A DNA stretch of 62,854 nucleotides, the filler included, from Hyphochytrium catenoides (Eukaryota > Protista > Hyphochytriomycota), in assembly GCA_900088475.1 (NCBI GenBank). It is 6 parts of 6 records of this genome, joined end to end, with 100 filler letters (N's around TTAATTAATTAA, not from the genome) between each part and the next. Parts side by side here need not be neighbours in the genome. Positions count along the whole stretch, not along the records: positions 7,565 to 20,258 come from FLMG01004493.1; 5 more parts are not named here. One strand, 5' to 3'. A model generated the notes under the pieces. It had not been told where the DNA came from, did not search any database, and was given only the letters and a program-made list of their open reading frames with translations. The position numbers and the translations under genes are program-made. Of the stretch, positions 4,301 through 20,258 are shown in pieces; within the stretch, counting starts at the first letter, position 1; every line of letters starts with the position of its first letter.

Positions 4301-7002
4301 AAACGGGCCATGATCCGCTTCCGTTCGCTACTATCTATTGCAATCTTACCTTCATTCTTCTCAACAGATAAGGGCTAATAAGATCTCTTAGAATCAGGGC
4401 ACACTTATACGCCATTTGGACCTGCATGGGAGAGGCGTTCGCATACCCTCCCAGGCGGATGGGAAGGGCTAGCTCCGCCTCGAAGGTGGGCAACACCCCT
4501 AACCGACCAGGAAAGGCAAAGTCAAAGAGAGACCAAAGCTCTCGGAGGTTGTTCTGTATAGGTGAGCCCGTCAGGATCAACCGATTGACGGTCTGGAAGC
4601 GCTTGCATACCTAACAAGAGCAGGATATTTGGCAGAGAACACAGTGAGCAATGACCCGCTAGAGAATATTACATGGGAAAGACGGCCACCAGTGTGATGT
4701 CAGCGTCAGGGTTGCGTATCTTGTGGCCTTCATCCAGAATTACATAGTCCCATTTCACGTTCAGAAGTATTTCCTTGTTGATGCGCACCCCTAGTGTACA
4801 GCCATGACTCTGAGACGCTGAGCACTAGGATTGCCAAAGAAACCAGCCACAGGGATAGCCAAAAGCATGGAGCGGGAAAATGGAGGAATGTCACCAAGAG
4901 CACAACAACCGCAGAGGTCGCATCTAGAGACCCCTTTGATCTTGACTGATACTATGTCGTACCTTCATAGGTCGTGATAAGAATGCCGCCATCTCGACTG
5001 ACTTTATTCACCACCTCGGTTCTCGATAGGGAAGACCCTACAGAGCCAGAGGAATGTAGAAGTAGGACCCTGCGTAATGCAGCATATCGGGTCAATGAGG
5101 CTCCGCCTTATTTCTTCCGTCGCTGTGCTCAGCAGCACTGCTGTCTGACCCTTTTGTACGAAGGTTGCGGCCCAGGCACTACCGTGAAGTGAGATGAGTT
5201 CTATTGCTAACATCTTTCTGACCTGAATAGTGGGTACCAGCGGTGTAGCTCTCTCACCCAGTGCCCAAGCACAGATGCAGGAGCGGCTATCAGCGTCGTC
5301 TGCAGCCGATTACTGTGTGCCAGAGATGCAAGATATGCAGCCACCTGAACCGTCTTCCCTAACCCCATCTCATCGCCAACAATACCCCCAGCGCGCTGCA
5401 TGCAACAGCAACAATAGCGAGAGCTCGTCAATAAAGGGCTAATATACAGAGATAGGGAAAGAGGACGCCGAAGCACTCATCCCGGCCTATGTCGTCTGGA
5501 CTTGTTCTTACCTGGGAAAAGAGCTCCCAGAGCCACTTTATCCCAACTCGTTGATAGGCATAGAGCTTTCTATAGATAAAGTTAGGGATACGAAGGCCGC
5601 CGTCCAGGATAATTTCTTCTTGGTCAAAGTATTCATCCGGATCATGGTCTTCCAAAGCCGTCAATCCTCTCTCTTCTTGTTCCTCCTCCTCTTCTTCGTC
5701 CTCCACAACCTCCTCTTCCGCCATGTCTTGTTCCTCTCCCTCTTCTCTCTGCTGCTCTCGAAGCCGTCTTGCCCGAAGCCTGTCTATATATCGTCTCTCA
5801 AAGGTCCGGAATCTCTCTTGTCTCTCTCTATACGCATCGCTATCTCCATCATCAACGGTACTGTGGATGGGACGAGTGGGAGAGACGGAGGTGCTGCTCT
5901 CTTCCAGCTCTTCTTCTTCTACTCCTCTTTCCATTTCCTCGATCCCTCCTCGTGTTCTCTCCCTACTGGAAGTCTTCCTAAGTCTTTTGAGCTTCTTTTC
6001 CTTATTGCGAAGGTGCTTTAGCCGCTGAAGGTTGCGCTGCGACTGTCCTCCAAGCTGGGTCTGGACCTTCTCTCTCCTCTCTGTCCCCAAACCTTCTTCT
6101 TCTGAGGATGAAGACTCTGCAGACGAGGAGAAGGACGACGTCGAGCCGTCCTTTTCTTCCTCGCTGGAATCAGCCGACGTAAGCTCTTCTCGTTCGGCAG
6201 CACGCGTTTTCTGTTCCTCAAGGGCTGTAGAAAGCTGCGTTGACCGCGGGCGCGTCAGGCAGCGGTCGATGTGACGGTTGATGGTGATGTTTGAGGTGGA
6301 AGAGGGGAAAGCGTTCCCGCAGACAGGGCAACGTGACGCACCATTTTCGTCATTCTTGGGCTCATCGTTGGTCTTCTTCTCCTTCTTCTTCTTTTTCCTT
6401 CCTCTTCTCTCCTCTGCCTTTCTTTTCCTCTTCCTCTTCGTCGTCTTCCGTCTCTCTCTCTCCTCAACGATAGCTCCGTCCTCGTCCAACTGGCCCTCCG
6501 CGTTTTCCAAGTCTTTGCCTAGCTTATAGTACATCATACTCCGGCGCGGTTGTGGGGCAGCGGTCGTCTTGTCTAAGCCTTGAATGCGATCGAAGGGTGT
6601 GATCAAGCCCAATCGGATCTTCCTCTCTCTCTCTGTCTCCTCCAGAGATAAGCCTCCAATGGTAGTCTCTCCTTGTTTGTCCTCTTCTTCCCCCACCCGC
6701 TCTTCATCGTTCTCAGTGCTCTTGGCGGTTAGGAGAGCACTCTCAAGAAGAAGGAGGATGTTCTCTTTCAGCTTAAGCTTTTCTCTCTCTCTCTTCCATC
6801 TCCTCAAACCTTCCTCCCGGCTCTTTTGCCCTGGAGGTTCCCTCATTCTCTGTTCCTCTCGAGTAACACTAAGAGCATGACGGACGGCGGAGAGAGAGAA
6901 AGAGGGGAGAAGAGAGGCCACCACGGAGCCAAAGCCCAACTTGGCAGCCTCAGGAGAGCGCTTAGCCCCGCGCATTGCTTTCTGCGGAGACACAAAAGTC
7001 AC
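1318..7002 (-). CDS. ERCC6: ERCC6/CSB/Rad26-like SNF2-family helicase (transcription-coupled repair); multi-exon, 5' end uncertain or cut by the scaffold end
   Basis: Spliced exons give [47 protein letters not shown] (motif I), [12 protein letters not shown] (motif II), [63 protein letters not shown]...[29 protein letters not shown] and PTWTG..G.AGAP. The C-terminus is the CSB-type FRQMLRELA...WFLKPEF with the stop at 1318. GT-AG introns were checked, e.g. 5396-5511, 5070-5222 and 4791-4962. Confidence 0.95.
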
Positions 7003-7464
7003 GAAGCTTAGTGAGCGCTTGGGGAAGGAGGAGAAGAGTATTTATAAAGCGCTAGGTGGAGAGGGAGGAGAAGGTAGAGATTGTACTCGTGCTCACTGGT
7101 GCCGTGTGCCAAGGACAGGCACCAGCGATGATGGGATGTGGGCGTGTGAGGAAGAAGAGAGAATAGAGAGCGAGAGGAGAGAGAGAAAGGGAAAGATAAA
7201 AGCTACAAGTGGTGCCAGGGTCAAGAAGCAAGAGGAGATTCAAAGAGTGCGAGAGAGACAGCAGAACAGAGAGACGTCAAAAGACATGGGGGGAGACCAG
7301 CCAGAGAATGCGTCTGACGAGAGGAATGGAGCTAGAAGGGAGAACGTCAGCAGAAAGGCGAGACAAGGGCTCAGCCATTGAGTGAGGCAAAGCCAAGGAG
7401 TGAGCTTGGCTTCAGAAATGGGAAGATAGCAAAGTACAACGGCGACAGAGACAGAGTGAGAAGC

Positions 7465-7564
7465 NNNNNNNNNNNNNNNNNNNNNNNNNNNNNNNNNNNN
7501 NNNNNNNNTTAATTAATTAANNNNNNNNNNNNNNNNNNNNNNNNNNNNNNNNNNNNNNNNNNNN
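7465..7564. other. Artificial scaffold-joining spacer
   Basis: 44 N + TTAATTAATTAA (stops in all six frames) + 44 N; the same spacer occurs five times. Confidence 0.97.
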
Positions 7565-8626
7565 GACACGCTGACCCATCTGGTTCTCCATAAAGAGAAT
7601 AAGCTTCAGTAAATGTTTGAAAGTCGCAATGTTGACAACATAGTTACCACCATAATAATGGGGTATCTTACCAACAAACAACAAGATGTAGCCACCCTTC
7701 CAGCCTTTTCTTGCAGAACAAAGAGGCAGATGATGGGATCTCATCGAGGAGATGATGCGAATGAAGGGTTTCAAGGACAAGCTACGCATGAACGGAATAC
7801 TGATGAACCTACCAGACTCTCTGAAGGCTGCAGTAGACGACATTCACCTTCAACGAACCGGAAACCTGACCACTGATCCGTCGGAAGAGTATCTGCTGAA
7901 CGAAGTTCACCGCCACCAAGCTCAGGAAGCTAGAACAGCCAACAAAGCAGACGATTCGGCTGTGCCCTATGTCGTTGCAAACGCACTTGATCTAACCAAA
8001 CACGTCTCCAAACAAAGAACAACCGCAACTGATCGTCTGCTCTCACTGCAAGCGCCGGGGAAGACACAAACCAGAAGCATGTTGGGAACTAGCTAAGAAT
8101 GCGCATCTTCGCCCATCATCGTCTCTCAAGCACACCCGTAAAGAGAAGAGCGTACCCGCCGACGACTCAACCGCACTATTTGCAGCTTTTATCAATTCGT
8201 TCGATCCGAACGAAAAGACCAAACTCATAAAACTCTCTCGGAGGAGCTTCCACTTATTCAACAGCGCATAAACCCGATAGGGACAAATCAATCGTAGGGG
8301 AAGTGAATTCGGCATGTACTCCTTTCTCCGAGACCCTAGGAACGTCGTGGATCTTTGATAGCGGCGCATCCGATCACATAACTGGCGATAGACAACAATT
8401 GGATACATACGAACAAATTGATTCGGTCAACCCTACAGACAGCAGACAACAGAACCGTTCAAGCAGTAGGCAGAGAAGCCGTCCGGCTAAATCTTTATGA
8501 ATCATCATCATTCTCGAGAATTTCCGACACACACCTGGCTTTACGAAGCATATTCTCTCAACTGGACAAGAACTTAAAAGGGATATCATGTAATTTTTAC
8601 CACAAGACGGTGGCGTCTACTACCTA

Positions 8627-9213
8627 GGAGGCCGTCCGGGTAATAATCAACAAAAATACCCACTTTTCTTCCAATTGTCCCACTTTTGGGCGTGGGACAT
8701 TTACCCTTATGGCTAGGCATTCCCGCCGCGCAGCGGCGAAAATTTGAGCGGAAGTAGATTATCGGCCGCGAAGCGCCGGAAAGTTCTTGGGTATATTCGA
8801 TGGATAAAGGTAAAATAATGACTAAAAAAGAACAATTTCAAGCAAATTTTGGCACTGGGAGATACTTTTCCCGTCTTTCACACAGTGACTTTTCCCGTCT
8901 TTCATACAGGGACAACCGCCAATGGAAAAGACAGGCTTAGTTCGAAGCCCACTTTTGGGGGTCATTTGCACTACAAAAACAATAGAGTGAAACCTCAAAG
9001 TGGGCTTCGAACTAAGCCTGTCTTTGAACACCGCAAGGTGTCCCTGTGTAAATGTAGGGCGGGACGCTCATACAGAAAATCCCCATACAAAGTNNNNNNN
9101 NNNNNNNNNNNNNNNNNNNNNNNNNNNNNNNNNNNNNNNNNNNNNNNNNNNNNNNNNAAGCCTAACATTGACCCATTGGAAAAGAGCCCACTTTTCTTAT
9201 GCGGACGGCCTCC
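8627..9213. mobile_element. Non-autonomous DNA transposon (MITE-like) inserted in the copia fragment
   Basis: Ends CCTAGGAGGCCGTCCG (8623-8638) and CGGACGGCCTCCTAGG (9202-9217) are perfect 16-bp inverted repeats that include a palindromic target (TA, CTAG or CCTAGG). There is no coding capacity, and an N gap lies at 9094-9157. Confidence 0.75.
8927..9025. repeat. Perfect 29-bp inverted repeat with a 41-bp loop inside the MITE
   Basis: aaagacaggcttagttcgaagcccacttt (8927-8955) is the exact reverse complement of 8997-9025. Confidence 0.95.
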
Positions 9214-12200
9214 TAGGAGCTCAATATCACTCATCATTACTACTCGTAGGAAGAGGCGACCACTACTATATTCAGCAGAAGCAGCAGTGGTATCTTAATG
9301 CGACAGAGCGCCTTCTTCCTCCCTTTCAAACCTTCAAACGGCCTCCATCAAGAGGATTCCCTATCGAACGGTAAGTGCAGATAAGCCGGTAGCAGGCGAT
9401 CGATCGAATCTTCAACACAAATAATAAATCAGGGGACAGAGGTTTCTGAAGAGCTCTCACAGCTGGAGGTGTGATGTGTAATAATACTGGTTGTTTCCGG
9501 TCGGTCTCCCATCACCGTTATATCTCTTCCCTGCGTGATGGGACGGAGGTGGAACAGTAATAATGGTGAAGAACAAAGCACAGTGAATCTGCGAAAAGAC
9601 AGCCTTTTATATCTTATTTGCTGCTGCTGGTACCGGCGGACGGTGCTTCTTATCTTTTTTTGTGTTGGTAAAACAGTAGAACTACTGGTACGGTAGGGAT
9701 GTGCCTTTTTATTAGGGTGTCTTTTTCTTCAGTTATTAGAATAGTAGACATGTTACGGTTTTCTTTTTCATCATTTCGAGACGCAGCTTTATTGTCTCGA
9801 GGCATCGAGGCTCTATCACTTGGGCTTCTTTATAAGAGACTGAGAGGAGAAAGGAATAAAGTGGTGTCTTGGGTTCCAATTCGCCTCTTTAATTTGTTTT
9901 ATTACTAGTAGTGAACCTGAGCCTCTTTGGAAGAGTAAAACGGCTTCTCCTGTCCTCAGCGTTGGGTTGGAGAAGGAACTAAAGTGGGAATTTGCAGCTT
10001 GAAGGCTCAATATTATATTCTAATCAGAGTCGTATTGCTTCCCCTTATTTTATTAGATCTGGCTAGTTGCAGTACAAGTACCTGCTTTACGTTTTTTTTT
10101 TTGTTCTGGCTTAGCTGCACTACTGTTTTACCGCATCAGAGTCTATTCTTTGTAGAAACTCTAGAGAAGATTCTGCAGACCATGGACACGTGTTACTATC
10201 CTTGGATTCGTTATTATTGTTACGCTGGGTAGAACGTTGTCTTCCCTTGTCCGAGTAAGGCTCCGTTATTACTACTACCACCCGAGAGCCTTATTATTAC
10301 TATCGGTGTACTACTACCGCCCGTGAAACGGTTGTTGAAGGTGATCATAGTCGTCGTGGGACATAGCAGACGATAAAGACTCTCTCTCCAACTATTATTG
10401 TCTCCACCTCTCCTTATTGACTTGACAGCTCGAAGGTCTTGCCTGCATCGCTCTCCTTCGGCTGACCTTGCTTTCCTTTCGTACTCCGCCGAGGTCACGG
10501 CAGGCCCACAGCGGATTCCACGTGCTGCAACGACAACGACAGTAGTCCTGCTTCTTATTAATCGAGTCATTCAGCAGCTCCTGTCCCTAGCGGGTTTCGT
10601 ATGAATAGTGAAAAATAAATGAGTCATAATGAATGTTCTTCTGTGGTTCTTCGGCAACAGGTTCTTTCACAACAACTCCATTGAGTTGCTAGTTCTTCCT
10701 CCCCCACTGCCATCTGTTTCCCCGCCCAATGATGCTCCCTTTCCTCTTTAAAAGGACAAAGCAGCTTGAGGATAACATCAACGCGAAGTTCTCTTCCTCA
10801 AGAGTTTAATTGTTTTGTGAGGATGATTACAGAGTGTGATGAAGAGTGCTTTGCTACAAGCTTACTTTGGAGCCATGAAAGACAAGTGAGAGAGAGGCGA
10901 GTGAGGGAAGAGTATAAAAGAACAGCTAGCCACCACCTTTCTCAGTCAACAAGGAACATAGGTATTGACAGCAGGTTGACGAATGTAGCTCTAGGAAGTG
11001 AACAAGGAGAGCGTCAACAACAGATCCATGTCTATTACGGAGTATAATCAGCCCCTCTATGCATCACTCATATTATCGCTCATGTGCTCAGCGGCCGTTA
11101 TTTTCAGCTGGAAGCGCCAACCAGGTATCTAGTGGCGTTCGTCCCTAGATGATGAGGGGGCAGCACATCGTTATTTGACAAAGGATATCTGCTGTTTCTG
11201 TGTGAAGGTTATTAGACGCCTGTCGCAAGAGGCTCAATGTTTTAGTTGGAACTGCTAATGATGATGAGAAAGGGCGTTTCCTCTTGGTCTTCCTATAAAA
11301 AGAAAAATTGAGAATGTACTGCTTCCACCACAAAGCATTAGAAAATTGTAGTCCATGTATGATGCACTTTGTCTGTCTATCCTCAGCAGTCTCAACACGG
11401 ACCCTGTGCTTTGCTGCCTTCTTTGAAATAACAATGGGAGCCTGACCAAATTTTGCTGAAGACCTGTCCTTTGTAGTAGGTCTCCCCCTGCTACTATCCT
11501 CTGAGAGAAGAAGTCTCCTTCTCGTTGCCTTGCTCACCAAAGGAAGACTCTCCTATAAGGCTACTGCTACTATCGAGTGAAACTACTCACTGATGACTGT
11601 TGCCGAGTGGGCGAGTGCCTGTCGCATGGATGATAACTGCCGTGGAGAGCCAGCAAATAAGTAAGGATTCTCCTTATTTACTTCTTTATTATAGACGTAT
11701 CCTTAGGCAGTGACGCAGCAGAAGCCCACAGGAGAAGAAGCTGACAAGATGCTCGCTGCGACCACCACGGGCCTCACTATAATAAATAACAGCATTCGGG
11801 AGTTGGTCAATATAACTGCATAAAGTTGCCCAGTACCAGCCAGCGTCGTCCCGGCATCCCCACGATTCCCATGAGGTACCACCACCAACAGCCTTTCAAC
11901 TGGCAGGAGGAGAGGCAGGGGCCGTACCCAGATCCTGGTGATTTGTAACCCTCGTCTTCAGCAACAGAGACCAGCAGTTAAAGGTAGTGCCTGATGGTGA
12001 TCGGCTCTCATATCTTGTCAAAGGTTACGTATGAGAAGAAGAAGGAGCTAACAAGATACATAGATGCCGCTCTACTAACTCCTTTCCTAACCGCCCTGAA
12101 CCTTGTTTATACTTATTATTACCTTTCTCTATTCTTTCCCTCTTTATGGAATGATGATAAGGCATTGCCTTCGGTTCATGGAGGCCGTGGTTGGCAAGCT

Positions 12201-13909
12201 TAAAGCAGCCAGAGCTTTCTATCATAAATAGAGAGTGCTGCAGTTAGTTGATACGAGTCGTAGTCGTTTCCTTTAACTGGCGATGAGACGGGACATCGGC
12301 AGCCTTAAGAAGTGCATCCTCCTTCGCCTTGTCTTGTGTGGAGGACCACGCAGCAGGCACCTAAGGCCCAGAGCGTTAGCTGAACTGACTGTGGAAAGTT
12401 CATCTTCTCGACAACCGAAGGATGAGGACAACGGAGAGAGGGGAAGGAGGGAAGAAAGAAGTGTAACAACCACTAAGATGACGGTGATAATGATGTGCAG
12501 TCATTCTCTCCTCCCCCACAGAGTCAAAATGATGATGGATGATGAATGAGGAGCCTAAGTCTAGCTTTTCTTCAGTGCCAGCAACCCTTGGCAGCAGATC
12601 TCTTCATCGTGATAGAATTCTGAGTGCAGATCTCCTCGAGAACAACTGCCATTCAAGTCGACAACTTATCTAACAACGTGCTACTCTCTTTAAGAGCTTT
12701 GACGACGGGGGCACCAGAAGAAAAGCGAGACGGTTGAAAAGCAGGACACATCGTTGGAAATCAACTTTCTTCTTAAGATGGCAAGGTCCAGGGGCGCAGA
12801 GAGGAGAATGGAGAATATCAGGAGGATGCAGCACCCGGCTGTGCACGGTTAAAGTCGTCGTAGGGGTGCTGTTGACGACGGCTTCATCAGCTACCTTATG
12901 ATGAAATCTACTAGTTAGCCTGTAGTTTTTGAAAAAGGAGACTGACAGTGCAGCCCTTCCACGGTTCGTGACAATCATCAAGACTATGACCACTATCCTC
13001 CTCCGTGGTGAAACAGGTGAAAAAGATAGTTACACCGTCGGTACTAGCGGTGATTAAGTTTATAAATAGAATAGTAGTACCAGTCGCTAACCCTGATCCA
13101 GGGTCGTCCTCCTCTCTCTTCTCTCGTCAGCAGCGCAGTATCAGCCTGTACGGAGAGATTGAGGGCTTAGTTCTTCAATCTTGCTTGGAAGCAGGAAGAA
13201 GATGGAGGTCGGCGGACCAGCAGCTCAAAGCGAAAGAGAAACTGCTTCAACAATGATCCTCAGTAGGAGAAGTTAGGTAATGGTGGGAGCAGGACGGGGA
13301 ACTAACGTGAGAGAAGACGAGGCGCCAAGGTGGAGAAGGAGAGTAATTCCGATACTGGCAAGGAGGAGTGATCGGGCGCCGCTTCTTCATCCAGCAGTTA
13401 ATAAACTTAGGGCGTGCGTTGGTTACAGCGGATCGATCCCCACCAACTTCTTGCTGCACCAGAGCGAGGGGGAATAATAACAACAGACGAAAGGAAAACC
13501 ACCACGACGGAGCAGAGCAGAGCAGATCTCCCTATGCTATGGGATTCTTAGTATCGATGTATGCCTCTTGCGCATAAAAAAGGCACCGCTGAGACATCAT
13601 CCATGAATGGCACCTGCAAACTTCAGTGTCTTAGCTTTTTTGTAGAGCTGCGCTATCCTAGTAGTATAGTCCGCCGATGGGATGGGTTGTTCTCAAGGTT
13701 GACGGCCGATCGACAGCGAGTGATGACTGCCATTCATCATCTTACCTCGAGGACAGAAGAGAGGAACCTGCTGCAGGACGAGGTTCTTCCTTAGGGCCGG
13801 ACCCTTGCAAGAACCTTGCAGGATCTCATAACAGCGATTCTAGCCCTTACAGCTGTCTGTCTTCTGCCTTGTGTTTTGGTGGTGCTAGCAACTTTCCTCT
13901 GAAGACGCC

Positions 13910-16900
13910 ATGATGGTGGCACCGGCCAAGTGTCAGCGGTCCCTTAATTGGACGAGGGCCGGAGGGGCATGGCTGACAGATTCCTTTGGCAGCAATGGTG
14001 GTTTTCTCCTCTCCTCCTTGGTTCTCCTATTGATGATGTCTCAGCTGGCTTCATCTCATAATGAAGACTGGACCAAGACCAGCGTTACGCAGCAGCAAAC
14101 AGCAACATCAGAAAGGTCATTGACGACAGCTTCAGATCGCAGTGGGACAGGAATAGTAGCTCTGGCAGAGCGTGATGATGGTGACCTGTCAACAAACATA
14201 ATGATTGCTGGAGGAACACTGTCCAGCAAGCTAATGTCGCGCGTGACCCGCTTTTATAACTATCTCAGTACCGTCGACGGCTCTGGCATGACACCCAGTG
14301 TGGTGAGCTATGCAGGGGTTGGCAGTAGCGTGGCTCGGGACAATTTCTTCCTTAAAAACACGGCAGATATTGCCCTTGTGGATGCTCCTCTTACCTCTTC
14401 AGATCTGGCAACCAAGTACACTGACCCCGATGTACAGATGCTTCCTGTTGCGGCCTCTGCCATCTGCCTCGTCTACAACTTGCCAGAGGCATCTAAGACG
14501 ATCACTCTCGATCGGCAAACCACGGCTCTTATCTTCCTCGGCGACATCATGTGGTGGAATGACTCAAGGATACTGGCCCTAAACCCTAACGCTGACATCC
14601 CTCAGCAGAAGATACGTGTTATCGTCCGTGCAGACAGCTCAGGCACAACTCAGGTCTTCACTCAAGCTCTCGGCAGCTTCTTGCCAGCATTTAGCACGCG
14701 TATCGGAACCAAGAGTCTTCCCGACTGGTGCGAGGGCCGCCAGGTATCGAGCGCTGACAAGAACCCTACCTACGGAGAAGTCACTTGCAACAAGGCAGCA
14801 CACTCAGAGTCCTGGACTTATTATCGCGCTAAAGGAACAGAAGGTGCAAGTGTCTCGGTGAGTTTGATACCGTATTCCATTTCCTATGGAACGTACGGCG
14901 AGGCTGCAGACATGAAGCTATCCATCAGTAATCTCGTCAACAAGGCAGGCACCACGGTGGCGCCAGGAGTAGATAGTATTGTCGGGGCCCTAATCATGGC
15001 TGAGGCGACACTAGACCACTACTGGAGAACTCCGCTACTTATCGACACGGACGCCCTTGGTGGCTGGCCCATAGTCGTCCTTCCCTACATCATCTATCAA
15101 AAGAAGACGCATATCGGAGACTGCACCACCCGTAAAGCACTCGTGCAATTCTTGCACTGGCTTCTAACAAGCAAGGACTTTGGCGCCATTGCCAGCGCTG
15201 TAGGCTTTACTTCGCTGACGGAGTTCACAAGGAATCGCATTGACAAAGAGATATTAGCTCAAGTACTTTGCGTGGATGCACCTGCCGACACCCGCCTTAC
15301 GCGGAAGACCTGCAATTCTCCGTCAAGCAACCGCTGCATAAGTCCTGGGTTCAAGGCTATGGTCATTCCTACGGTCTCTTTCCGTCATCCTGAGTACGTG
15401 TCTAGCATCGTGACGACCTACGCAGATATCATCCAGCAGGTACGCCCCTTCAGGCTGGAGCAGGATTCTACGCACATCTCAGACGAGGCCACGGCCTCTA
15501 GCCTGCTGGATCTTGCTTCACAGGGCACGATGGCCGTAGTCTTTCCCACGGAGCTGCTTGGCAAGGATGCGAACTATACGATGGTACTAGCTGCTTACGA
15601 GGACACCTCCATTGCCCCTTTCTTCGTCACGCCTGTGAAAATAGCCTTCAATTTGGGGTCAACTATCACAGAGCTGACTCTTACCAGCGAGACCTTAGCA
15701 CAGATCCTCATGGGGACGATTGAAAACTGGAACGACCTCAAGCTTGCGCCGCTGAACCCTTATATCAAGCTTCCTGACCTCGCAATCACCGTCTTAGTAG
15801 ATGATGTGAAATCGCCGGTGGCTAGAGCCCTTGCCAACTATCTCTCAGCCACGGACAAGCGCTTTGATGAGCGCTTGGGCCTTCCGCTGGCCGCCTCAAA
15901 GGCCGCGATCCGGCCGCTGGGAAGTCTCCAGGTGGTGGCGGCAGGAGTCACGGCGACGAATGGATCTATTGGCTTCATCTGGGGAACAAGTGACAAGTCC
16001 TTGTATGGGGCGAGCCTGGCTTTGAATGACAACAAGGGCGTGGTCAAAAGCGACATCGCTTCGCTTCAACAGTGCATCGACAGCTTGGGTGATAGCGCTA
16101 TTCTGACACCGTCTAAGTACGTGTCCATGTTTCAACCGATAGGTTGGGCAAGCAACTGCTGGCCGATCACCAAGTCCTTCAACGTGGGCATCAAGCGCGT
16201 GTGGGCCAGTGGTGAGAGCGTGGTAGCTGCTCGTTATGCCGATACCTTCCACTGGCTCGCTGAGGCCACAGTTGATGTTGTTGCCATGGCCCCACTTTCT
16301 TCCCGGAGCCGCGTGGCTAGATCAGTTTCGGAGATCCGGCTTGGCGCCAAATCTATTCTCAAGCCGGAGCCCTTATGCGGGCTTTCTGACATGGCCTTCA
16401 ACATCACTGAGTGCCTTCCGTCGAGAGGGGCCATGGTGGCAACGTTCTACTGGCTAAGGGGTCCAGAGGAGAAGTGGTGCTTAGACGGTCTTCCACTTCC
16501 ATCCGAAGTGCTGGTCGAGTGCGATCATATGCCACTAGACTCTCCTGTGACGAAGATGCTGCTAGCGCTCATCACGCTCTTCACAGCGATCTGCGTAGTG
16601 GTGCTCCTGCTGGCGCTTCACTTCCGCAGGACCAAGGTCATTACCTTGGGCCAAAGGACTTTCACGAACATGTTTCTCTTCGGCTCGATTCTCTTGAACC
16701 TCTCTGGGCTAACGCTCTTCGGGGAAAACACAAAGAGTTCGTGCAACCTTCGTGTCTGGCTGCTGTCCCTGAGCTTCACCATTACGTTCGCCCCTCTGCT
16801 GATGAAGCTCTACAGAATACACCGTCTCTTTAACCAGAAGCGGTTGAAAAGGATGACAATATCTAACATTGTCGTCATGATGGAGACCAGTGCCTTCATC

Positions 16901-17455
16901 GCTGTTGATCTGATTATCCTTGGCATCTGGAGCATCATCGCTTCACCAGGATCGACCTTAGTCAAGTTGTATATGCCATCACTGCTGTCGGATGTCACCT
17001 ATGAGCGCTGTGACTATGGTGATAGTACAGGTATCTACTTTGTCATCGGATGGAAGGTCGTTATCTTGGTCGTCGGGGTTCTGCTCTCCTTCAGAACCTG
17101 GAACTTGGTCGAGGACTTCTCGGAAGCAAAGCCTCTAGCCATCGCCATTTATAACACGATCCTCCTCGGCATTCTGGCGCTGGTGCTGACCAGCATGCCG
17201 TCAGCAAGCTCCTACACCTCTATCATTATCCTATCTATGTCTTGCTCCTTGATAGCGACAGTCCCGGTCATCCTCGTCATGGGCCCCAAGCTCTACTACC
17301 TCTACAAGTACAAAGAGGCGCGAAGCAGCGGAACTTCAATGGGAGTTACAGGCACCACCACATCGGCCAACGCTCGCAATGGAGAAAGCACCAAGAACGA
17401 GAAGAAATCTTCGCAACAGGTCCAGCCTGAGAAGGTCGACCCCGCCACAAAGTAG
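13910..17455 (+). CDS. Class C-type GPCR (7tm_3) with two N-terminal PstS-like phosphate-binding domains; intronless, 1181 aa
   Basis: Signal-like hydrophobic segment at aa ~32-49. PstS motifs: AGGTL, YAGVGSS, VDAPL, LVYNLP, IFLGDIMWWND...LNP, VRADSSGTTQVFT, NKAGTTVAP and WPIV. A second, degenerate PstS repeat has LAQILMGTIENWND...LNPYIKLPDLAITV and GSIGFI. A four-Cys linker leads to seven hydrophobic helices with CNLRVW, KLYRIHRLF, FSEAKPLAIAIYN and PKLY. Confidence 0.9.
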   Translation: MMVAPAKCQRSLNWTRAGGAWLTDSFGSNGGFLLSSLVLLLMMSQLASSHNEDWTKTSVTQQQTATSERSLTTASDRSGTGIVALAERDDGDLSTNIMIAGGTLSSKLMSRVTRFYNYLSTVDGSGMTPSVVSYAGVGSSVARDNFFLKNTADIALVDAPLTSSDLATKYTDPDVQMLPVAASAICLVYNLPEASKTITLDRQTTALIFLGDIMWWNDSRILALNPNADIPQQKIRVIVRADSSGTTQVFTQALGSFLPAFSTRIGTKSLPDWCEGRQVSSADKNPTYGEVTCNKAAHSESWTYYRAKGTEGASVSVSLIPYSISYGTYGEAADMKLSISNLVNKAGTTVAPGVDSIVGALIMAEATLDHYWRTPLLIDTDALGGWPIVVLPYIIYQKKTHIGDCTTRKALVQFLHWLLTSKDFGAIASAVGFTSLTEFTRNRIDKEILAQVLCVDAPADTRLTRKTCNSPSSNRCISPGFKAMVIPTVSFRHPEYVSSIVTTYADIIQQVRPFRLEQDSTHISDEATASSLLDLASQGTMAVVFPTELLGKDANYTMVLAAYEDTSIAPFFVTPVKIAFNLGSTITELTLTSETLAQILMGTIENWNDLKLAPLNPYIKLPDLAITVLVDDVKSPVARALANYLSATDKRFDERLGLPLAASKAAIRPLGSLQVVAAGVTATNGSIGFIWGTSDKSLYGASLALNDNKGVVKSDIASLQQCIDSLGDSAILTPSKYVSMFQPIGWASNCWPITKSFNVGIKRVWASGESVVAARYADTFHWLAEATVDVVAMAPLSSRSRVARSVSEIRLGAKSILKPEPLCGLSDMAFNITECLPSRGAMVATFYWLRGPEEKWCLDGLPLPSEVLVECDHMPLDSPVTKMLLALITLFTAICVVVLLLALHFRRTKVITLGQRTFTNMFLFGSILLNLSGLTLFGENTKSSCNLRVWLLSLSFTITFAPLLMKLYRIHRLFNQKRLKRMTISNIVVMMETSAFIAVDLIILGIWSIIASPGSTLVKLYMPSLLSDVTYERCDYGDSTGIYFVIGWKVVILVVGVLLSFRTWNLVEDFSEAKPLAIAIYNTILLGILALVLTSMPSASSYTSIIILSMSCSLIATVPVILVMGPKLYYLYKYKEARSSGTSMGVTGTTTSANARNGESTKNEKKSSQQVQPEKVDPATK

Positions 17456-18789
17456 CAGCTTACGCTCAGCTGTCGGTAAGGACCTGATAGTTGATAAGAA
17501 GTTCGCCTCTATAGCGAATAACCCCAAATAATCGAAGACCCAAGCTCCTCTGAACGTCCTTCTCTTTGACAGTTCTTCTCGCTAGCTTGCATACCCTAGT
17601 GTCCTTGATAGACTTTACCCTCCACGGTCATTCATACTGATGCCGACATCATCATAGAGACGCTTCTGTCCGTTTGTCTCCCATGCCTTCAACGTGCTGT
17701 CAACGATTAGCGGGCTGTTGTCCGCCAGGAGGCTTGATGCGGCGGTCGGTTTGCCTGTAGAACACCGGACTGTAAAGCCAAGAAGAGCAGATGAACTGTC
17801 AGGAAATGACCCGCCTGGCGCAATGCGGTACCATCAGAGTGCCCAAGGGTCGGGAAGTAGTAGAGCGCCTGGGCGATAGACAATCCTTCTCATGTGTCTG
17901 GGAGGGCCATTCGACGTCTCAGTGTGCCTGTGGTGCGCACAGTGACCATCTCTCCTGCCCTTGGCGTACAGCTTACCCTCGTCTCAGCCTCATAAGTAGC
18001 GGATTGGAGGGCCCTGTGCCTTTCAAGCGAGGCAGGACAGACAAGATAGACACAGAAGACAAGCACACATCCCAAACCCCATCAGCTAGCAGCGGAGATG
18101 CGTGCAGTGGATGAACAAAGAACTGAGGTCCATCTGTCCGCTGGTGACGACAGAGACTCTGCGCCATCAACATCCGGTGCAATGGCTGGTAATAGATTTA
18201 TTGAAGGCATGGAGAAACCTAGCATGTTCCACTGCGGGAGGTCACTATGGATGCCGCCAGAACCCAGGTCCGCAAGGCCAGGTTGACGGCGCCGCAGCCT
18301 AGTAAACAGCCCAGCTCATGAACATCAAAGGCTTCTCGCGTGTATCCTCACTTGCAGCGGGAGATGTGGCTCACCTCTGAGAGGAGGAAGCCATGGCAAA
18401 GGGAAGGACAGAGCGCAAAGAGCGAAAGAGAGAGAGAAAGAGAGAGAGAGAGCGGCTGACAAAGATGAAGGAAAGAGGCAATACATCGGACCCAGAGCAG
18501 TGCGTGGTCAGGAGAAAGCAGACCACAGAAGGCCGAAGACTCAGTCTCTGCTTGCTGGTCCAGCCTCCAGGTCAGGCATCGTGAGAGTCTATGAAGAGGA
18601 GAAGGAGGATTGCCAGTCAGTCCTGCTCCTTCGCCGCCGCTCGCTGGTGATGCCGTCAGGAGACGGAGCAATTTTGGAGCTGACAAGGACCAAGAGAGAC
18701 AGAGAAAGAGAGAGAGAGCTCGCAATGATGAGGAGTTTGAGGCGGGCCCAGTGATCATCGAAAGGTCATTCATACAGACCAAAACCCAA

Positions 18790-19500
18790 TTAGAGAGGGA
18801 AGGGGGAGAGACAGAGAGAGAAAGAGTCAATGACAGAGAGAAGGAAGAGAGACAGAGAGAAAGAGTGAGACAGAGGGAGAGAGAGAGAGAGAGAGTGAGA
18901 GAGAGACAGAGACAGAGGGACAGAGAGAGAGTGAGAGAGAGACAGAGAGAGAGACAGAGAGAGACAGACAGAGAGAGAGAGAGTAAGAGAGAGAGAGAGA
19001 GAGAGANNNNNNNNNNNNNNNNNNNNNNNNNNNNNNNNNNNNNNAGAGAGAGAGACAGAGAGAGAGAGAGAGACAGGAGAGAGAGAGGAAAGAGAGCACC
19101 TGGAAGTTGTTGGGGGTTGGCGGGAATATTCGATTGGAGTCCCACCCACCTTGGCCCCAAGCGATATGAGCTTTATTGGTGGTGGGTGGGTCGGCCCCTA
19201 GAGAATCAGAAGGAAGTTCACCATTGATCCTTATCAGCCCATATTAACCGCCCCCTCTCACCTAATAAAGCCTTCAGGGATTGAACTACCTGATACTTAA
19301 CCGCGGCGAGGGAGGATGAGGGTGTGGAAGCGCACGTTCAGCTAGCTCTCTAACCCTCTCTCTCTCTCTCTCGCTCTCGCTCTCTCTCTCTCCTCCCTCC
19401 CTCTCTCTTTTCTCTCTCTCCCTCTCTCTCCCTCTCTCTCCCTCTCTCTCTCTCTCTCTTTCTTTCTCTCTCTCTCTCTCCCTCTCTGTCTGCTCACACT
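18790..19500. repeat. (GA)n/(CT)n microsatellite-rich tracts
   Basis: Long GAGA/GACA runs at 18790-19095 (with an N gap at 19007-19044) and CT runs at 19345-19490. Confidence 0.9.
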
Positions 19501-20258
19501 TATGTGGTTTTCCATCCCAATTTTTTCTCTCCCTTCAATCCCTTGAGAGAGCCTTCCCTCTTCTGTCACCTTGTGTCCGTCAATCTCTCTCTCTTGTGAT
19601 TATCGCGCTTGTCTCTCCTTTGCTGCCGGCATCCACAGCGCTCCTCCCAGCAGCCCACTACTAGGTGACAATAGACACATTCAGCGGTTGCTCCTGAAGT
19701 GCCTGCAGTTGCTCTCACTTCGGTCTCTCTACTCCCAGCTCAACAGGGTGCTTCTTTCTTTCTCTCAGTCTCTCTCTCTCAGTCTCTCTCAGTCTCTCTC
19801 TCTCTCTCTTGATGCTTAGTAGAGCACCGTCTCTTTGAGGTTTCTCTTTCTTTTCACTGAGGCAAGAGAACAGAGGATAAAACCTGATCTTCGCATCACC
19901 TTGTGGCTGGAAAGAACTGCACCATCGGCTTTTCTACCTTCAATTGAAGGCGAAAGACTTGCAGCAGAGCTGGGAGAGCGAAAGGAGTAAGGAAGTCGGT
20001 CACCGTGCTGGCAGTATGTCAGGTTAGAGCATCTTTCTCTCTCTTTGTCTCTCTCTCATCCTTGCTCTCTCCCTCTCTTGGCTGCAGGCTCTCTCTTGCC
20101 TCCTCCCCCTATTGGGCTTTATTTCTCAGGCCTCCGGGCTGCTTTTCTTCCTCTCCCCTTCTGGAGCCCACCATCCTCTGGCAGCGAGACTGTGCTTATC
20201 TTAATATTGACTTGCATATCTATCTATGTGAGGCGTTAGACCTTCTCTCTCTCTCTCT

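Follow-up and report, generated by a model that had tools for sequence, protein, structure and literature searches.

A class C receptor of Hyphochytrium catenoides with two PstS-type domains in series, the first retaining and the second lacking the phosphate site

The window analyzed here is a stretch of 62,854 nucleotides, filler included, from the protist Hyphochytrium catenoides (assembly GCA_900088475.1), in which six parts of the genome are joined end to end. The part at positions 7565–20258 (record FLMG01004493.1) contains a gene for a class C (glutamate-type) G-protein-coupled receptor (GPCR), whose ectodomain is made of two domains with the fold of the bacterial phosphate-binding protein PstS, a type II periplasmic binding protein. 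The gene is an uninterrupted, intronless open reading frame (ORF) of 1181 codons and a stop on the + strand (13910–17455). Its product comprises, in this order, a signal-like hydrophobic segment, a membrane-distal PstS-type domain (D1), a membrane-proximal one (D2), a four-cysteine stalk and a seven-helix (7TM) domain of the 7tm_3 family. D1 carries the complete phosphate site of PstS, and D2 is a complete PstS fold with the anion site removed. With moderate confidence we propose that the protein is an extracellular orthophosphate-sensing class C GPCR, in which D1 would be the binding flytrap and D2 a non-binding module for transduction or assembly.

The domain assignment is supported by several profiles. 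Pfam returned 7tm_3 at 3e-41 and PBP_like_2 at 4e-29, the latter in two separate stretches of the protein, and both halves of the ectodomain score above the cut-off of 27 for PF12849 (D1 80 bits, D2 28.1 bits). Both also match the PstS profile TIGR00975 far beyond chance, D1 (region aa 90–480) at 4.5e-51 over profile positions 5–310 of 315 and D2 (region aa 481–875) at 4.3e-19, with scores of 173.8 and 68.7 bits that lie under the equivalog cut-off of 205. ANF_receptor and NCD3G gave no match up to E 1 in the Pfam scan of the protein, and weak matches to New_glue and TGase_elicitor, far under threshold, were dismissed. By Kyte–Doolittle scan, the segment at aa 30–50 is the single N-terminal hydrophobic one ahead of the ectodomain; it is probably a signal peptide, and would then be cleaved.

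In PstS, phosphate is held by T10, F11 (through its backbone), S38, D56, R135, S139, G140 and T141, with a salt bridge between R135 and D137. We established the equivalent positions by sequence and profile alignments, using as reference the Yersinia PstS 2z22, whose mature-protein numbering equals that of E. coli, and an alignment of 34 intact PstS-like domains (A2). D1 contains all eight coordinating residues plus D242, the counterpart of the aspartate bracing R135. They are found in the motifs AGGTL (aa 100, nt 14207), GVGSS (aa 136, nt 14315), VDAPL (aa 157, nt 14378) and RADSSGTT (aa 240, nt 14627). An earlier note on this DNA, written from the sequence alone, had claimed that the first domain keeps the PstS ligands, and the alignments bear this out for T103, S139, D158 and R240/D242/S244/G245/T246. 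The column of T103 is S or T in 33 of the 34 sequences of A2 and the following one F or L in all 34, while R, S and G of the binding loop are invariant. Moreover, the AlphaFold2 model of D1 (pLDDT 86.5) superimposes on phosphate-bound PstS with TM scores of 0.87–0.92 and an rmsd of 2.3–2.6 Å (Foldseek).

Relative to bacterial PstS, D1 contains an insertion of ~25 residues (14711–14803, aa ~268–298), bracketed by C274 and C293, which are both kept in P0153, a metagenome protein of 1033 aa that is the closest full-length relative. The insertion comes after the binding loop, close to the cleft, in a part of the model that has lower confidence, and it could regulate how accessible the cleft is. 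Together with the sub-threshold TIGR00975 score, it would be compatible with D1 sensing another tetrahedral oxyanion or a phosphorylated compound (arsenate, phosphite, a phosphonate or a phosphate ester). Yet all nine positions of the PstS site are conserved, including D56, the residue by which PstS discriminates phosphate from sulfate, and the nine are identical in P0153 at an overall identity of 34%. We thus consider a ligand other than orthophosphate quite unlikely for D1.

D2 presents the opposite picture, a scaffold that persists around a degenerate site. The scaffold motifs quoted in the earlier note, LAQILMGTIENWND (aa 596), KLPDLAITV (aa 620), GSIGFI (aa 685) and WPIT (aa 751), are all found in the +1 translation of the ORF. 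The replacement of RxDxSGT by VDDVKSPV (aa 630, nt 15797–15820), which the note had also pointed out, is confirmed by the alignment to 2z22 and can be described more precisely: R135 is changed to D631, D137 to V633, G140 to P636 and T141 to V637, while S139 is retained as S635. In the N-lobe, profile–profile alignment places E495 at T10 and P546 at D56, so that these two ligands are lost as well; Y496 is the equivalent of F11, and S38 corresponds to either D519 or S520, an ambiguity of one residue. Apart from S139 and perhaps S38, six or seven of the ligands are lost and the charge at the key arginine is reversed. Intact phosphate ligands, looked for in D2 by sequence and profile alignment, were not placed there.

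The fold itself is that of a complete PstS domain. A profile of 51 D2 domains aligns with the 34 intact PstS-like domains at an hhalign probability of 100% (E 1e-40, 331 columns), the aligned stretch starting at the first beta strand and reaching the last helix. The AlphaFold2 model of D2 (aa 476–875) has a mean pLDDT of 83.6 and a pTM of 0.79, and its top 49 Foldseek matches in the PDB are all phosphate-binding proteins of the PstS, PhoX and DING types; the best PstS matches reach target-normalised TM scores of 0.72–0.75 over ~340 aligned columns with chains of 321 residues. A cysteine pair specific to D2 accompanies this fold: among the 51 domains C722 is invariant and C750 at least 90% conserved, and the two probably form a disulfide.

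The membrane domain is that of a class C receptor. PF00003 matches aa 876–1127 with 142 bits against a cut-off of 33.5, and the closest relatives of solved structure are mGlu4/7/8 and GABA-B1/B2, at about 1e-17 to 1e-14. The class C motifs 'K..RI.R.F' (transmembrane helix 3 (TM3) to intracellular loop 2), 'F.EAKP' (intracellular loop 3 to TM6) and 'PK.Y' (TM7) align with these relatives, MKLYRIHRLF, DFSEAKP and GPKLYY falling on the corresponding motifs of mGlu4, and the cysteines of TM3 and extracellular loop 2, C945 and C1034, are kept in P0153. Upstream of the helices, the PstS-type flytraps and the four-cysteine stalk replace the usual flytrap of LIVBP type and NCD3G. The stalk, which has no NCD3G match in Pfam, forms strands at aa 828–832, 841–848 and 867–870 in the model, and its cysteines are kept in P0153 and in the A1 consensus.

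A different function was proposed for the homologues in Plasmodiophora by Rolfe et al. 2016 (PMC4815078), who labelled proteins with 7tm3 and PBP_like_2 "novel transporters" for phosphate and sugar and regarded them as unique to it; the call was made on domain content alone. Applied to the present protein, this would make the ectodomain a substrate-binding device that feeds a seven-helix permease for nutrient uptake. The membrane domain is, however, a typical class C GPCR, the motifs of its G-protein-coupling region align with those of mGlu and GABA-B, and no transporter family was matched in Pfam. We reject the transporter reading on the 7TM evidence as extremely improbable. The annotation in Plasmodiophora is probably wrong too, and the 7tm_3 evidence and the wide distribution of the architecture argue for revising both the "transporter" and the "unique" statement.

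Homologues are distant but numerous. A word-index protein search with the whole protein found no match, and the same search with D1 alone found two distant receptors and nothing else. The exhaustive search yielded 9232 matches, 83 of them at or below 1e-30 and none above 36% identity. Domain maps of ~60 homologues revealed dozens of PstS-PstS-7TM proteins of 1000–1400 aa, and the Hyphochytrium receptor shows the colinear order D1, D2, cysteine stalk and 7TM of this tandem PstS-PstS-7tm_3 family. P0153, which belongs to the best-matching cluster, is colinear with the Hyphochytrium receptor; the identity is 40% in both D1 and the stalk, 31% in D2 and 41% in the 7TM domain. It shares twelve ectodomain cysteines and repeats the asymmetry: D1 is identical at 9 of 9 ligand positions, and in D2 the place of R135 is likewise taken by Asp, the remaining loop residues being different (V633/K, P636/D, V637/M) save S635.

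To compare the sites across the family, the ligand columns were read in all matches with a hidden Markov model built from 28 D1-like domains. The binding loop was aligned in D1 as well as in D2 of 41 two-domain homologues; as these come from the top 150 matches to the query, the counts describe its neighbourhood and not the whole family. In 11 receptors, the query included, the D1 loop (RxxxSGT) is kept and the D2 loop lost, in 30 both are lost, and a kept D2 loop, with that of D1 either kept or lost, occurs in 0. The asymmetry noted in the query is hence found again in its homologues. Since the D1 site is also lost in many members, the family is not uniformly one of phosphate receptors.

At the G140 position, 33 of the 51 D2 domains have D or E and a single one has G (P0015), the D2 of which is nearly intact. 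In a receptor clade with P0006, P0008, P0009, P0016, P0018, P0019, P0020 and P0027, the middle of D1 is interrupted by ~250–300 inserted residues, which separate the matches to its two lobes. Most of its members have RDSGT in D1, and their D2 loop reads R-x-x-x-S-D-T/V-N, conserved over ~17 sequences, which suggests that D2 of this clade has a functional non-canonical site.

Such residues are relevant to the possibility of a two-input receptor, where D1 binds phosphate and the cleft of D2 a second ligand by which signalling is tuned or gated; the acidic D631/D632 would suit a cation or a small molecule that is neutral or cationic. The full two-lobe flytrap fold of D2, the acidic residue in place of Arg in both the query and P0153, the frequent replacement of G140 by D or E and the conserved R..S-D-T-N loop of one clade are in line with it. 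But in the cleft loop the query and P0153 agree at D631 and S635 alone, the near-invariant columns of D2 are scaffold residues or cysteines and not those of the cleft, and the evolution of D2 is faster than that of D1 and of the 7TM domain. A second ligand in D2 of the Hyphochytrium receptor is thus unlikely, although it deserves consideration, and we prefer to see this D2 as a non-binding module. A more far-reaching proposal, speculative and improbable as a whole, would have D2 not as a dead spacer but as an ancient, purpose-built pseudo-PstS transducer with a second, non-phosphate site in some lineages, for example a cation site made of the acidic residues found in place of R135 and G140, and the receptors as the first dedicated eukaryotic cell-surface GPCRs for orthophosphate. 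If true, phosphate would be integrated with a second signal within one chain.

The origin of the two domains was addressed with trees. In a FastTree analysis of 101 domains, a branch with support 97 sets all 51 D2 domains apart, the D2 of P0015 being nearest to the D1/D2 split, and parallel sub-clades appear in the D1 and D2 halves. The site-heterogeneous C20 model in IQ-TREE, with 43 domains, recovers the D1|D2 split at an SH-aLRT of 99 and gives D2 longer end branches than D1. In both trees the D2 of the query is placed among those of its homologues (support 97–99). As a single branch separates the D2 domains from the D1 side, the trees fit one ancient duplication, which would have been followed by an early loss of the D2 site.

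Altogether, we propose the following mechanism for the Hyphochytrium receptor. D1 would close on extracellular orthophosphate, and D2, binding no phosphate itself, would act as a rigid or hinged module of transmission and assembly. D2 would relay the closure of D1 to the 7TM domain by way of the disulfide-braced stalk, the receptor probably being a dimer, and external phosphate would thereby be reported through heterotrimeric G proteins. The analysis shows the two folds, the kept and the lost site, the pattern in the family and the class C 7TM domain; which ligand is bound, what D2 does, whether a dimer forms and how G proteins are coupled are inferred. The scheme is in line with the earlier note, which had taken the first domain as the ligand-binding one and the second as a lever, a dimerisation unit or the site of a different ligand.

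Several observations weigh against this proposal. In most two-domain homologues the D1 site is absent as well, so that the scaffold clearly has other ligands too. The specificity of D1 could differ from that of PstS, given its score below the equivalog cut-off and its ~25-residue insertion. As all D2 branches are long, the D2 grouping could partly be due to long-branch attraction, and the R..S-D-T-N loop conserved in a large D2 sub-clade suggests that D2 is not always inert. Finally, no functional study or experiment on this receptor family was found in the literature.

The detection of extracellular phosphate by eukaryotic cells is still poorly resolved. The sensors proposed so far are transporters acting as transceptors, or receptors that have other primary ligands. 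A GPCR with a distal PstS module in which every phosphate ligand is kept is hence a direct candidate for a phosphate sensor. Its built-in non-binding twin, D2, offers a natural experiment on the way in which a closing flytrap can act on a class C 7TM domain when the canonical cysteine-rich domain is missing. Moreover, members of the receptor family occur widely among protists, one of which is the clubroot pathogen Plasmodiophora.

The combination of PBP_like_2 and 7tm_3 is already catalogued. Besides the Plasmodiophora proteins discussed above, it is listed for Spizellomyces punctatus SPPG_06488 (PMC3251606) and appears in the domain legend for amoebozoan family 3 GPCRs (PMC10445921), and a protein atlas holds 7tm_3 + PBP_like_2 clusters from Discosea and Chlorophyta. 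The receptors of Plasmodiophora (P0010), Spizellomyces (SPPG_06488) and Physarum have the same, colinear architecture as the query, at an identity of only ~30–34%, whereas the papers list a single PBP_like_2 domain for them. No description of the tandem arrangement or of the site asymmetry was found in the literature. P0010, which is Plasmodiophora brassicae PBRA_005806 (CEO97692.1), has the D1 nearest to that of the query (33% identity) and resembles it in its intact D1 site and degenerate second domain.

PstS modules are also found in other contexts. Bacteria have tandem PstS domains with both sites intact, for example in a Candidatus Brocadiia MAG (metagenome-assembled genome). Among the eukaryotic signalling proteins, P0060 joins two intact PstS domains to a protein kinase and a guanylate cyclase, and a sensor role for the query fits with such fusions of intact-site modules to other outputs. 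Further arrangements are PstS-PstS-ANF_receptor in P0035, four PstS domains with Ephrin_rec_like and a TRP-like channel region in P0004 (Chromosphaera perkinsii), and a 7tm_3 domain with a C-terminal RGS domain in P0002. The distant homologue P0001 is encoded on a Logan contig (L001; regions 1–1313 and 5001–8540), where another 7tm_3 receptor gene, with a faint match to Peripla_BP_6, lies ~3.7 kb upstream of it in the same orientation. Because of this second gene on the same contig, class C receptor genes may be clustered in the organism of P0001.

The coordinates of the features are collected in Table 1. The gene stands alone in its surroundings, which are eukaryotic in character: more than 6 kb upstream and ~2.8 kb downstream are free of recognisable coding sequence. 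All other ORFs of the piece 7565–20258 are at most 150 aa long, except two of 270 and 205 aa from a low-complexity GA-repeat region at ~18.3–19.2 kb, and the Pfam scan, which covered the flanking ORFs apart from these two, gave no match for any of the ten. In the same piece no Rfam family was found, and the scan of flanking ORFs found no genes of the PstCAB ABC importer. Arrays of GA/AG and CT/TC microsatellites lie downstream (18806–19096, 19356–19491, 19753–19809 and 20032–20083), the upstream non-coding DNA has a 24-bp unit repeated 2.1 times at 92% match (8864–8913), and runs of N at 9094–9157 and 19007–19044 are assembly gaps.

This isolation beside microsatellites, together with the lack of an identical or close protein on record (by exact-sequence look-up and metagenome scan), could be taken to mean that the gene is a non-functional relic, an unexpressed or decaying copy in gene-poor DNA. 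Against this, 1181 codons are open without stop or frameshift, and P0153, at an identity of 34%, shares with the query all residues of the D1 site, the twelve paired cysteines of the ectodomain and the motifs of the 7TM domain. We find a relic hardly credible and retain the view of a probable phosphate receptor.

Table 1. Features of the tandem-PstS receptor gene, with positions along the window
Feature	Position	Strand	Evidence
Complete ORF, tandem-PstS class C GPCR	13910..17455	+	Pfam; colinear with 1033-aa homologue P0153 at 34% identity
Hydrophobic segment, aa 30–50, probable signal peptide	13997..14059	+	Kyte–Doolittle scan
S/T-rich linker, aa 51–95	14060–14194	+	Lies between hydrophobic segment and D1
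D1, membrane-distal PstS-type flytrap, aa ~96–453, intact phosphate site	14195..15268	+	TIGR00975, AlphaFold2 model, Foldseek
T103-L104, equivalent to PstS T10-F11	14216..14221	+	Column in alignment A2
S139, equivalent to PstS S38	14324..14326	+	Alignment to 2z22
D158, equivalent to PstS D56	14381..14383	+	Alignment to 2z22
R240-A-D242-S-S244-G245-T246, equivalent to PstS R135/D137/S139/G140/T141 loop	14627..14647	+	Aligned to RADGSGT of 2z22
Inter-domain linker, aa 454–480, conserved cysteines C454, C468, C476	15269..15349	+	Low confidence in model; cysteines kept in P0153
D2, membrane-proximal pseudo-PstS, aa ~481–815, anion site lost	15350..16354	+	TIGR00975, hhalign, AlphaFold2 model, Foldseek
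D631-D-V633-K-S635-P636-V637, degenerate counterpart of RxDxSGT	15800..15820	+	Aligned to R135-A-D137-G-S139-G140-T141 of 2z22
D2-specific cysteine pair C722 and C750	16073..16159 (first codon to second)	+	Conservation in 51 D2 domains
Four-cysteine beta-rich stalk, aa 816–875 (C823, C835, C857, C871), from D2 to helix 1	16355..16534	+	Model, cysteine conservation
Class C seven-helix domain, aa 876–1130	16535..17299	+	PF00003 at 3e-42
Cytoplasmic S/T/K-rich tail, aa 1131–1181, and stop	17300..17455	+	Translation; 25% identical to P0153

The receptor can be compared with several known systems. With bacterial PstS (E. coli 1IXH/2ABH, Yersinia 2Z22) it shares the fold in D1 and D2 and, in D1, all ligands; the bacterial protein docks on PstCA, whereas the two domains described here are fused in series to a GPCR. 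It also departs from PstS by the sub-equivalog score and the cysteine-bracketed insertion of D1 and by the missing site of D2. From mGlu and CaSR, with which it has the 7TM domain and its motifs in common, it differs in having neither ANF_receptor nor NCD3G; CaSR has been proposed as a mammalian phosphate sensor.

In GABA-B, GB1 binds the agonist, and the flytrap of GB2 binds nothing and is yet required. The earlier note had likened the asymmetric ectodomain to this division of labour. The likeness stands only for the pairing of a binding with a non-binding flytrap above a class C 7TM domain (E about 1e-14), and it does not extend to the arrangement: the flytraps of GABA-B are of LIVBP type and sit side by side on separate chains, while those of the Hyphochytrium receptor are of PstS type and follow each other in one chain. 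Tandem flytrap sensors are the sensor kinase BvgS of Bordetella (VFT1-VFT2) and the ionotropic glutamate receptors (iGluRs; ATD-LBD), in which two domains of periplasmic-binding-protein fold are placed in series on one chain, one being the primary ligand site and the other modulatory or structural. Their outputs are a histidine kinase in BvgS and an ion channel in iGluRs. The ligand-binding domain of iGluRs is the membrane-proximal one, an order that is the reverse of that in the Hyphochytrium receptor, the putative binding domain of which, D1, is distal.

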